From the NCBI GenBank assembly GCA_964057225.1, contig OZ059900.1:6200001-6264000 (forward strand): DNA of 64,000 nucleotides, read 5' to 3'. A model generated the notes under the pieces. That model had not been told where the DNA came from. It did no database searches and saw only the letters and a program-made list of their open reading frames with translations. Origin of the DNA: Auanema rhodensis. Taxonomy: Eukaryota > Animalia > Nematoda. Both the position numbers and the translations under genes were made by a program. Shown here piece by piece: positions 25,401 through 30,377 of this stretch; positions within the stretch are counted from its first letter, which is position 1, and each line of letters starts with the position of its first letter.

Positions 25401-26015
25401 CAACTGCATTAAACATCCTCAAACGGATAGGATAGACAAAGTGAAACATAGAGAAGTTATACCATAAAGCGGGAAATAGGAGGAGCAAAAAGCACTTGTG
25501 ATATTTTGAATTTAAGCCAACTAACAGCTCTAAGAGACAGTTAATTGCGCATCCAGTTTGCTCACTACTCAGCTTTGTGCTTCATCCAAAATATGCCGTT
25601 TGCTCTGCCTTTTTCACTTCTATACTCTAAGTTTTTAATTTGAAATTATAATTCTTATTTTCAAAAACTACATTCCCTTTTTAATCTCGCTCAAACAATC
25701 TCATATGACATATCTCTATAAGCACACATTACTTAGAATAAGTGCTCAAATCTCAAAATAAATCTAAATCCATCTATATCTTTTTGAGAAAAAGAAAAGC
25801 CGCTGAAAATTTTTTTTACGAAATGTGAATAAAATTAACTTCCCCCCCTATATAGTTTGAATGAGCGGACACATTGATGAAAATTTCTATTATTTCTAAC
25901 GAATTTATTTATAATTATCATGTATATGTTTTTGTTTTTAAATATATGTCATTACCCGTTCGTCTTGATATAATTTAATTTTATATTTATCTAATTTAAT
26001 CTTTTTACACTATGA

Positions 26016-26021
26016 TTACAG
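26016..26021 (+). promoter_or_regulatory. 3' splice acceptor 8 nt before flp-12 ATG (candidate SL trans-splice site)
   Basis: TTACAG after an AT-rich outron-like stretch, directly before GTGAAATT-ATG; could instead end a 5' UTR intron. Confidence 0.45.
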
Positions 26022-26029
26022 GTGAAATT

Positions 26030-26538
26030 ATGAAAAGCATTAGCGTCATTGCTTTGTTCATCTGCTTCCTTATTGTCAATGCTCAGAGCGACGGTTAGTT
26101 GAAACATTGTACTTTTTTTTGAAAATTATCAATTAAAAATCAAATTTATTGGAAATATATGTTGATATTGTTCATGAATATTAGATACTTGTATTAGTTA
26201 AGTATTTAAACAAATATATATATATATCTACTATGGCTACTTGTTTTTATGTAATTATATATACTTATTCTAGGATCTGTTGATGCAGCGCTGGTTGCCC
26301 AACAAGAGCAAGACCTAGAAATGCTGAATGAGGTACAAAGAACAATTAGTTTTCAATATTAAATTCTCATTTAGCTATCATCTCGTCTCGTAAACTCATT
26401 AAAGATTGTTCAGAATCTTAGAGATGGTAACGAACATTTCGTATATATTTTAATTATCTGCTTATTTCAGGTCCTCAAGGCAAAGTGGCTGAGAAGCGTC
26501 GTAATAAGTTCGAATTCATTCGTTTTGGACGTAAATGA
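26030..26538 (+). CDS. flp-12: FMRFamide-like neuropeptide precursor FLP-12 (RNKFEFIRFamide), 4 exons, 80 aa
   Basis: Exons 26030-26093, 26274-26332, 26375-26426, 26471-26538, all GT-AG, phases consistent. Translation MKSISVIALFICFLIVNAQSDGSVDAALVAQQEQDLEMLNELSSRLVNSLKIVQNLRDGPQGKVAEKR-RNKFEFIRF-GRK*: signal peptide, KR cleavage site, amidation G plus RK. RNKFEFIRFa is the conserved nematode FLP-12 peptide. Confidence 0.96.
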
Positions 26539-27591
26539 GCATTGATCATGAAATCGAACTGCCATACAGTTTATGAGGGAGAACTGTGTGGCAGAACGAT
26601 TTCGTGAAAGGCACTCATTTGCCACATGACCCGTTGCGCTTTATTATGCTGCTGCTATTGCTGCTTATGATTATTATGAAATTTAACAAAACGTTTTATG
26701 CGATCCGATCTTACACACCCACAATTGTCTCCAGAAGGTGTCTTCACTAGTACACAAACTCACACACATGATCTCGAGCATCGTCATTGATTGTTGCTGA
26801 ATGAATATGTTGCAGAAATTGTGTTTTTGTTGTTGCAAATGTACAAGTTCAATCAAACAATAGCCTTATTTACATCGAAACGACGAAAATTACTCAATTG
26901 AAGAAGCAATTTTGAAAAACCATCTATACGAGATCTTAACATCTATACAAGTTTTTTTTAATATAATGTTTGGTACATGCATTCTTTATTAGAAATTAAA
27001 TATTGAAACAAATAATATAAAATTAAAAAAAATATTATTTTGCATTAAAATCTTAAAAAATATGAGAATTACAACCAGAATCGGATGTCAAAACTTGAAA
27101 AGTCTCAAAACTGGAACGCTTATGTTCAGCTTGAAGAAAAAATATCATATTAGATAAATAAATTACAAAACGAAATTGCTCAGCAATTTCGCTATTAGAT
27201 CATATGGCTTAAAGCAAAAGTTAAGCAATACTATGTGTTAGTATTCACTAACATGGAATAAGAGGAGTAGTAGATGTAGTTAAGCAGAAAGCTAAACTTT
27301 CATATAGCGCGAATCTTTTATATCTGTATATATGCACATGAAATATTAGCTAGTTCAACATTCTGCTCAACCAATCTTTTTTTGTCTTGAATGATGTGAC
27401 AAGTTAGTTGACCGTTATCGGATAATTTTTTAGAATGAAGCTATTTAGAAAATCATAGAAAAATTAGAAAATTAGAATATTTCAATACATATATGGAATG
27501 GTTGCATAAGTATGTTTCTAATTTTTTAACATATAAAAAAAGGAGATAATTACATATACGATGATGGACTAGATATTTGTACCACATACCA

Positions 27592-30377
27592 TTACAAGAA
27601 TTTTTTTACATCAACTTCTGGATCCTTGGTATCTTCAAATTTGAATTCACGGAAGAAAGAATAAACGCTACTTGTCAATTTTTGTTTTTGATGAAAAATT
27701 TTAATCAAATGTTGGACTGCGCTAAAATGTTTATTATTCTATTTTATATTTCTTCTAATTCAAAATACCTTCGAATTGTGATAGTGACGTATTTCGTTCC
27801 GGTTTCTTTACCCAAGTGTGGCTCTAGTTTCACGGTGCAGAATGTTCTTTTAAAGAAATGAAGTGAACGAATTTTTCTTTTACATAGTTGCACATTAATA
27901 AGTTCGTGAAACTTTTTCAAGCAAAATACCTATGAGATAAGAAATATAGTGAAAAAATATTTTTCTACTTACAATAGCTCGTGTTTGACTGTGTTCCACA
28001 GCTTCATTAAAGAGAGCACTTCTTACATATACAAGCCGATTTGAATTGTGGAATGTAACAGTATTTTCAGCACGATTATATAGCAGTTTAATATCAATCA
28101 CAGGCTCCGAGCTAGATAGCGCAAGGCTTTAAACTAGTTTACATTATTAGAACTTACGAATCGGGAAGCGAAACTTGTATTGTTTCGCATGCAGAAGTCA
28201 ATTCTTTTGGGTTTATAGTGGTTCCAGCTACCTGCAACAACGAGCTTCATAAAATAAATTAAATTAATATGATTAAACTAACACTGAATTTTTGCATCAC
28301 CTCTAAGCCTTTACATGTGGTAATTTTACCCCAAACGGGATCTGAAAAGAGATTTGTTTACTTAAATTTTGTGAAAATGATGAGGTTTACCAAATCTTGT
28401 ACCACATCGAATATACGTCTGATTTCGAGAAGTACGCATTAAAATGGCTTGTTCGTAATATTGGCGGTATACCTTAGCGCGACCAAGAGGGAAAACAACA
28501 AGAGGATACTCTGTACTTCTCAGACAATGCAGAGAAAAGAAAGCTTCAAGTCCTTGATCTTTGATTAGTTCAACAATTTGCATGAAGTTCAAATAGCATA
28601 CACTCAACACTCTTATTGTAAACCATGTGTCTGAAATAATTTGATGACAAACCAACTTTGAGCTGCTAAGATTACGCTGAGAGTGGAACAGACAACGTGA
28701 ACTTCTTCTTCGAAAATTGCTAACTATATGTTTACATTTTATAAGCATCGACTCAAAACTTTCCAATATAGATTGGAAATCGCAAAGTTCGTATATATAT
28801 TCGAGAGTCATGTTCAAACTGTCTTCACGCAAACCGTCGTTTATTTGGCTCATGCACTTGATTATATTGTATAATGCATCAAAAATTGTATTCATATGCT
28901 GACAATGCGAACCTTAATATAATTCATAAATAATACTTACTTTCATCAGCCGATCAAATAGTTAAAACGAAACTCACAACCGCAGATAGTAATGCGGTAC
29001 ATAAGACGAGCCATTAGAGGTGGATCAAAAACCAAAAATTGTTTGTTCTTTTTCTCGACTTTTTTATTAAAATCATCTAAAAGTTTATGTACTAATAGAG
29101 TTCGAGTGCAATATTCTTCTTGTTCAATAAAAAAGTCATCTATAACAGAAACAATGTTACTGATTGAAGTGGTTCATAATGGTTACCATCAGGATGACTA
29201 TCTGGTACTGTAATTCCTGGATCCTCTCCATGATTTAGTTGATAAGCAGTTTGAATACAAGCACGATGAAGTTTATTTGGATGCGAAACATTAAGAATCT
29301 CCCTCGCAATAGTGTTGCATAACTCCTCAGAGGGCGGGTACTGAGGAGCCAAAGCTGCACATAAAAGTTCCTGTTCGGTGTACTTAGAATTCGATTTGGG
29401 TAAAAGACATTGCTCAACAGGATGAGTCGTTTCCACAATTATATCTTTGTTGTTAAGAACTTGTTGGTCTACATTAAGATCAACGGGTTTGCTACATGTA
29501 ACAACATCAGCTGTCAACTGTTCATTCCCGCTCACAGGACTACCTGGTAACTGCTCACTATTACTAACACAATCAGCTGCCAATTGCTTATTAGCGCTCA
29601 TTGGACTGACTGGTAATTCTTCATTACCACAAACGGCTGCCGTTGTTAATTCATTAACTGCTTGCACTGCGATCGTATCATCCATTAAAGTTGGTAGCTC
29701 ATCGATTGAATAAGTTTCCTCTTCCATATTATCATTCACCAAAACTTGTTGCTCTTCACTATGATCAATTGGCTCATCACGAACAGGATTAGTATTTGAT
29801 GTATTAGATATACATCCAACTAGCGAAGATGGTTGCTGTTCTAAGGAAAAAAATTCATTTACTGGTGTAGTGCTATTTGGAGAACTCAATTGCAACTCAT
29901 TAACACTGATAGGCTCAGTTGCAGCGAAAATTGCTGGTTGTTGAAACGGAACAATATTATTATTTTCTAAGCTTGCTGATTCTATATTAGACGCTGGATC
30001 ATTCATGTCAAAATAAAAAAATTCACTCATAAAATTCCTGAGTAATGGAGTTTGCATTAGAGGTAGCGTTGCTGTAGGCTCTATAAGGTATATTACAACT
30101 TCGCTCTGCTCTATGCTCTCAGTTACTCACCCTGCTGAAAAGAAGGCTCATCTATGTTCATTGCTTCTCCTTGTTCGTTTGCCTCAGAACGTTTCTTTCT
30201 TTCGTTTTCCTCTCCTAAATTCATAAGAGCAGTCTTCAACTGTATAATTCAAGTAGGTTTCTCACTTTCTTTACGTTCTAATGCCTCAAGCTGTGCTATT
30301 AATAGAGTTTCTAAATCTTCATGCCCGAGAAGGTGGAAACCGACTTTATCTGCAGGAGGTTGCCCGTCAGATTCCAT
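27592..30377 (-). CDS. Uncharacterised 778-aa protein, 10 exons: acidic low-complexity N-half with 11-aa repeats, C-terminal divergent SMAD MH2-like domain
   Basis: Exons 30377-30266, 30214-30131, 30080-29187, 29139-28978, 28912-28391, 28341-28283, 28231-28158, 28111-27973, 27929-27769, 27721-27592. All GT-AG, phases close, 2337 nt open frame MESDGQPPADK...EVDVKKFL*. Joins track ORFs 30249-30548, 29140-30057, 28362-28895 and 27895-28101. The gene model is well supported; the MH2 call is a by-eye alignment. Confidence 0.8.
29497..29661 (-). repeat. Coding tandem repeat, 5 x 33 bp (11 aa)
   Basis: AVNELTTAAVC / GNEELPVSPMS / ANKQLAADCVS / NSEQLPGSPVS / GNEQLTADVVT; 165 bp = 5 x 33; alternate units are more alike (66-bp higher order). 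Confidence 0.75.

Follow-up and report, generated by a model that had tools for sequence, protein, structure and literature searches.

Nematode Smads of the DAF-14 type lack an MH1 domain (Inoue and Thomas 2000), and DAF-14 itself reportedly retains a canonical, Pfam-recognisable MH2 domain together with an L3 loop and a phosphorylation motif at the C-terminus and belongs to the dauer transforming growth factor beta (TGF-beta) pathway. Expansion and Rebuff carry an MH2 domain without being Smads; they have a short L3 loop and an added helical part, and have no part in TGF-beta signalling (PMC4388265; PMC6176944). A third point of comparison is given by the IRF-3 association domain and the FHA domains, in which the Smad/FHA beta-sandwich can persist without detectable Smad sequence similarity (PMC4388265). 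Here we describe a nine-exon gene on the minus strand (30239-27592) of a 64,000-nucleotide stretch of Auanema rhodensis DNA, in the following called the window (C8:6200001-6264000; AT-rich, G+C content 30.9%; source genome 181 Mb). The gene is one of two members of a lineage-restricted family. Its tail, encoded by exons 4-8 and comprising the last ~165 residues, is on balance likely to descend from a Smad MH2 domain. Descent from an MH2 domain is favoured because four partly independent lines of evidence, each of weak to moderate strength, converge on it: the chromosomal position of the paralogue, shared introns, a profile match of exon 6, and weak but colinear matches of further exons. Among described proteins, Expansion and Rebuff are, by analogy, the closest counterparts.

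The gene is real, spliced and expressed. It comprises nine exons and ~744 codons that read open from an ATG (30224) to a TAA stop codon (27592-27594), and all its introns are of the GT..AG type and 43-65 nt long. The G+C content is 36.6% in the exons and 25.3% in the introns. A sequence-only reading of the window had proposed that the gene ends in a highly divergent MH2-like domain, and all the peptides that it quoted were recovered from five successive minus-strand exons (28341-28283, 28231-28158, 28111-27973, 27929-27769, and 27721-27592). Transcript data were taken from three small public runs of one study (X1-X3), each of which covers parts of the gene at low depth and in patches. In two contigs of run X1 the stretches 27722-27768 and 28112-28157 (CT..AC on the plus strand) are precisely spliced out, which shows that the exon 7/8 and exon 5/6 junctions are used in transcripts; the proviso of the sequence-only reading that transcripts might fail to join these exons is thereby excluded for both junctions. 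Exons were joined for the frame check only and all similarity tests were made exon by exon. The gene model, including the MH2 elements proposed for each tail exon, consists of the following features (window positions).

30131-30239, minus strand: probable first coding exon, with an acceptor-like site at 30239 and the first in-frame ATG at 30224, MNLGEENERKKRSE
29187-30080, minus strand: exon 1, acidic and of low complexity, ~298 codons, with contigs of runs X1-X3 over 29216-29783
28978-29139, minus strand: exon 2, ending within the second Cys codon of a CxCxxC motif at a phase-1 intron
28896-28984, minus strand: CxCxxC(xH) cluster CGC/SHCQH, split by intron 2 (slash)
28391-28912, minus strand: exon 3, the middle domain, 173 codons, predicted with low confidence to be all-helical
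28283-28341, minus strand: exon 4, proposed MH2 strands B1/B1' (VWGKITTC...), followed by a phase-0 intron after Trp-counted residue 17
28158-28231, minus strand: exon 5, proposed B2-B3 (..TINP..), 74 nt, without a significant match
27973-28111, minus strand: exon 6, proposed B5-B8 (IKLLYN..TVTFHN-SNRLVYVRS), the best-supported MH2 segment
27769-27929, minus strand: exon 7, proposed B9, helices, B10, shortened L3 and B11, starting with VFCLKKF at a phase-0 intron
27592-27721, minus strand: exon 8, proposed helix H5 (AVQHLIKIFHQ) and, after it, 23 further residues up to the stop codon TAA

Exon 3 detected a single further gene in the genome, located 147 kb away at C8:6079754-6081446 on the plus strand. 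The middle domains of these two paralogues match with E-values of 1.3e-4 genome-wide and 4e-8 locally; no other part of the gene is significantly similar to the paralogue. When exons 2, 6, and 7 and two exons of the paralogue were searched against the genome, no additional paralogues emerged. Relatives outside the genome were likewise not found: a word search with exon 3 returned none, an exhaustive HMMER search with its 173 residues against 1.84 billion protein representatives gave 0 matches at E<=0.001, and the best score among ESM Atlas features (0.81) was noise. The designation of the gene as an orphan, made from sequence, thus stands for other genomes and falls within its own, where the search for paralogues that had been recommended found one. 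This absence of outside relatives would be less remarkable if the clade is thinly sampled. We modelled the paralogue as nine GT-AG exons with an intact frame of 393 codons. Its CxCxxC motif (CDC/CICKD) is interrupted as in the nine-exon gene, at the same codon and by an intron of phase 1, and its C-terminus (...KTEAF) has no SSXS. The five tail introns are common to both paralogues in position and phase (1, 0, 2, 0, 2), and four tail exons are of similar size in the gene and the paralogue (59/62, 74/74, 139/136, and 161/167 nt). BLASTP failed to align the tail exons of the two genes, which are nevertheless homologous as judged by their shared introns, phases, and exon sizes. Intron 6' of the paralogue (C8:6081120-6081161) is 42 nt long, in frame and free of stops, and its retention would therefore add 14 residues and not truncate the protein.

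The extreme divergence of the tails and the shallow, patchy RNA evidence are what would be expected of a decaying duplicate, that is, a pseudogene or a non-functional transcript that yields no working protein. Both copies, however, have kept intact open frames over nine exons together with all splice sites and phases, G+C content is higher in exons than in introns, and the transcripts are correctly spliced, so that we consider decay scarcely credible.

A complete Smad gene lies tail-to-tail with the paralogue at a distance of 4.5 kb, with its MH2 domain at C8:6085912-6087330 and its MH1 domain at 6091362-6091761 as located by PF03166 and PF03165 scans. Either family member would be found so near to an MH2 locus by chance about once in 1000 (an estimate based on ~8 loci in 181 Mb). 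The introns of this neighbouring Smad agree with those of the nine-exon gene at two sites. Counted from the Trp of VWGKI, the gene has a phase-0 intron after residue 17, and the neighbouring Smad likewise has a phase-0 intron after residue 17 from the Trp of NWAVFVYYE; the corresponding intron follows residue 18 from the Trp in the paralogue and in two other Smads of the genome (L009 and L013). Another phase-0 intron immediately precedes VFCLKKF in the gene, AFSYKNF in its paralogue, and VYDQTF in the adjacent Smad, at the site where canonical Smads have IFNNQEF. Two of the five tail introns thus match own-genome Smads in both position and phase. A comparison of the middle domain with the neighbouring Smad gene revealed no similarity. 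The latter (C8:6085912-6091761, minus strand) has a long Ser/Thr/Pro-rich linker and an insertion of ~30 residues between helix 2 and B10 of its MH2 domain, and is possibly co-Smad/DAF-3-like.

The strongest similarity to an MH2 domain was obtained with exon 6. We aligned the two-paralogue alignment of this exon by hhalign to the B5-B8 segment of six own-genome Smads and one R-Smad, and obtained a score of 21.7 (P = 3e-4, probability 40%). The aligned stretch (IKLLYNRAENTVTFHN-SNRLVYVRSA) covers the MH2 B5-B7 core (GVxLxY..GEVxxxxxS..IFVQS) in the expected register, which is the same block and register as had been proposed by eye. None of the 400 column shuffles (8.6 +/- 1.9, maximum 15.9) and none of the 47 natural decoys (<=11.0) reached this score, and the reversed query scored 8.4. 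Against single Smad fragments, exon 6 had z-scores of 3.0-3.7 for the equivalent B5-B8 pieces of three own-genome Smads, versus -1.4 to 1.8 for non-equivalent Smad pieces. For the other exons, hhalign placed exon 4 Trp on Trp (P = 0.021) and exon 7 at IFNNQEF.. (P = 0.04), so that exons 4, 6, and 7 each align to their own expected MH2 segment. Combining all five exon tests by Fisher's method gives a P-value of ~2e-4. When the hhalign profile was dominated by R-Smads, exon 7 alone was at its expected place (P = 0.18). In a constrained exon-wise alignment to the MH2 segments expected for them, exon 7 had a z-score of 3.5 relative to shuffles and of 2.7 relative to natural decoys, exon 8 one of ~2.4 and exon 4 one of 1.3; exons 5 and 6 showed no signal.

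Several results weigh against descent from an MH2 domain, and much the same results speak for the alternative of a rapidly evolving gene, confined to its lineage, with a beta-rich tail that folds in a way unrelated to MH2; the block similarity would then be a product of pattern-seeking, and the Smad neighbour and the two introns would be due to chance. Every standard family, sequence, and PDB search was negative. Pfam returned no match at E<=10 for the exons of the gene or of the paralogue, in exon-by-exon testing of reduced power. The whole-genome scan with PF03166 found eight Smad loci and neither family member. A local hidden Markov model (HMM) built from 75 R-Smad MH2 domains scored ~0 bits against each tail exon with all filters off, and given these values it is unlikely that the joined tail would reach significance with this model. 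Sequence and profile searches of the PDB retrieved no MH2 chain; their chance matches were syntaxin, DDX41, and photoactive yellow protein, the last being the top match of the exon-6 profile. The hhalign tests gave no signal for exon 5 (P = 0.3) and exon 8 (P = 0.67), the paralogue exons taken singly were mostly non-significant, and the tail exons of the two paralogues cannot be aligned by BLASTP. Of the five tail introns, three have no counterpart in Smads. The small template of the positive exon-6 test was picked after a broader one had given negatives, and an out-of-frame control piece reached a z-score of 3.4 by chance. In addition, the gene had been singled out for looking like MH2, and its similarity by eye therefore bears a look-elsewhere cost.

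Structure prediction gave no usable model. AlphaFold2 without an alignment returned an all-helical model of exon 3 with a mean predicted local distance difference test (pLDDT) score of 45. The second target was the paralogue exon 6' joined through its 42-nt in-frame intron to exon 7', the only stop-free stretch over two tail exons, and its model (pLDDT 36) was too weak for a fold search. The order of elements in this model (four strands, helices, two strands) would be compatible with the second half of an MH2 domain.

An unrelated fold is opposed by the exon-6 score of 21.7 in the predicted register, which neither the 400 shuffles (maximum 15.9) nor the 47 decoys (maximum 11.0) reached, and by the placement of exons 4, 6, and 7 each on the expected segment. 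It also has to account for a closeness to a Smad that is expected about once in 1000 and for two exact coincidences of intron position and phase, both with the very Smad that adjoins the paralogue. We regard it as a doubtful explanation that nonetheless deserves to be taken seriously; were the tail fold not MH2, the locus would represent an expressed lineage-specific gene of unknown fold. For the MH2-like tail proposed from sequence, the outcome is accordingly divided: standard profile searches gave no MH2 match, the finding that the sequence-only reading had named as counting against it, whereas the targeted profile-profile test of exon 6 against the MH2 segment was positive with clean controls and agrees with gene structure and paralogue position.

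With MH2 descent as the preferred reading, the tail can be compared with Smads block by block. It resembles the Smad MH2 domain (PF03166), and especially that of the neighbouring Smad, in weak similarity of blocks that follow in the same order, namely the B1 Trp, the B5-B7 core, the IF....F start of helix 2, and a B10 strand of the pattern C-T-hydrophobic-basic. Like the neighbouring Smad, it has the two identical phase-0 intron positions and a C-terminal location of the domain. It differs from Smad MH2 domains in lying under every Pfam and HMMER threshold and in the absence of helix H1, which, as read from the exon sequences, would be missing after exon 5. The L3 loop would be shortened from 17 to ~10 residues (EPHLGKETGTK, between the proposed B10 and B11) and lacks SFVKGWG. 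A CxCxxC motif and a helical domain occupy the place of the Smad linker, and MH1 and SSXS are absent. The lack of MH1, of SSXS and of the canonical L3 loop had been noted from sequence, and all three were confirmed: the PF03165 genome scan matched four Smad genes and neither the nine-exon gene nor its paralogue, the C-terminus reads ...DVKKFL, and ~10 residues stand in place of the 17-residue loop of Smads. The gene shares with DAF-14 that a nematode protein bears an MH2 domain, here a proposed one, and has no MH1; it differs from DAF-14 in having no canonical MH2, L3, or phosphorylation motif. In contrast to the IRF-3 association and FHA domains, for which there is no sign of descent, gene structure and position here indicate Smad specifically.

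The likeness to Expansion and Rebuff is closer, in that these too are non-Smad proteins with a divergent MH2 domain, a short L3 loop, a helical element before the domain, and neither MH1 nor SSXS. The nine-exon gene could on these grounds be a divergent member of the Expansion/Rebuff N-alpha-MH2 family of protostome non-Smad MH2 proteins and not a recent Smad derivative. The L3 loop measures 11 residues there and ~10 here, and the family, with its helical part before the MH2 domain and its lack of MH1 and SSXS, is present in nematodes (PMC4388265). Compared by description, however, the MH2 domain of Expansion and Rebuff is N-terminal and followed by a variable C-terminal region, has ~16% identity to Smads, and is publicly annotated as MH2, with nematode orthologues recoverable by PSI-BLAST (PMC4388265), whereas the proposed domain of the nine-exon gene is C-terminal (last five exons) and unseen by standard tools. 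Exon 3 has no match among the 1.84 billion proteins, and the shared introns and the position indicate a local Smad. Membership in the family is unlikely, as the domain is C-terminal and invisible to Pfam, and weighed as a full explanation of the locus it appears very improbable. A search for an Expansion-like MH2 domain among the other MH2 loci of the genome (L026-L028) revealed ordinary Smad-like L3 regions only.

Four MH2 loci of the genome have no nearby MH1 match (C3:18.02 Mb, C4:17.81 Mb, C3:8.63 Mb, and C6:13.17 Mb). The MH2 domain of the last of these, L026, is very divergent (..KIFDMKKF..CIRVALVK..TPCWFAIVNL..). The best-conserved R-Smad gene (L009, C6 at ~7.02 Mb) has an intron between ..RRRIGNG and VRLTYV.. 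without an AG before the downstream exon, an irregularity that points to a non-canonical acceptor or to a local error in the sequence. A Dictyocaulus protein (P0001) has an odd insertion where this intron without AG sits.

Upstream of the tail, the acidic, repeat-rich region and the Cys/His cluster that had been pointed out from sequence were both borne out. Exon 1 has an isoelectric point of 4.1, with 43 D+E versus 10 K+R, and contains two tandem 'EQLPxSPxSxNxQLxAD' units at ~29487-29620. The cluster is the CxCxxC motif divided by intron 2. The probable first coding exon is connected to exon 1 through a phase-1 GT..AG intron of 50 nt, and the 5' end is tentative. We also considered a frame of 42 codons upstream of it (30249-30377, minus strand; MESDGQPPADKVGF...EKPT, then a stop) as an extra 5' exon and rejected it, as it offered no in-frame join: the candidate introns are only 26 and 35 nt long and both lead to stops. 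This frame could be an upstream open reading frame, the end of another gene, or the mark of an assembly indel. Downstream, the 450 nt that follow the stop codon contain no AATAAA. A contig of run X3 at 27339-27506, 86-253 nt past the stop, could be the 3' untranslated region of the nine-exon gene or of a convergent gene at 26012-26540 on the plus strand. The latter, a neuropeptide gene of three exons, encodes a signal peptide (MKSISVIALF...), ends in ...KRRNKFEFIRFGRK, and resembles a flp-12-type FMRFamide-like peptide precursor.

On the reading that the tail is an eroded Smad MH2 domain, we propose that it arose by duplication, probably from the lineage of the complete Smad that adjoins the paralogue. 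The domain would then have been stripped of helix H1, the 17-residue L3 loop, the SSXS tail, and MH1, and the remnant would have been fused to the CxCxxC motif and the helical domain and, in the nine-exon copy, also to the long acidic, PxSP-containing region. The beta-sandwich that remains may serve as a protein-protein interaction module. Smad structure and function imply that loss of H1, most of L3, SSXS, and MH1 precludes receptor docking, phosphorylation, and entry into phospho-Smad trimers (PMC4388265), and the module would thus neither be phosphorylated by TGF-beta receptors nor join canonical phospho-Smad trimers, as has been reported of Expansion and Rebuff. Gene structure, splicing, transcription, the paralogue and its place beside a Smad, the common introns, and the exon-6 profile match are observations; fold, origin by duplication, and function of the tail are inferred, and the role of a receptor-independent regulator or decoy, which had already been suggested from sequence, is conjectural. 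The most specific form of this idea would be that the MH2 domain of a co-Smad-like gene, relieved of its receptor and trimer interfaces and fused to CxCxxC/helical and acidic, PxSP-rich parts, acts as a receptor-independent adaptor or decoy that modulates the output of its parent Smad, for instance in the TGF-beta signalling that governs dauer or body size; we put this forward as a rather improbable but concrete proposal.

If the tail is an MH2 remnant, it would represent a second route, beside that of Expansion and Rebuff, by which a Smad interaction domain has left the TGF-beta pathway, and its descent could still be read from gene structure and chromosomal position when similarity in sequence was all but lost. 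The two genes, one of them beside a complete Smad, would then be an unrecognised Smad-derived pair that could be tested for a part in TGF-beta-dependent traits in nematodes.

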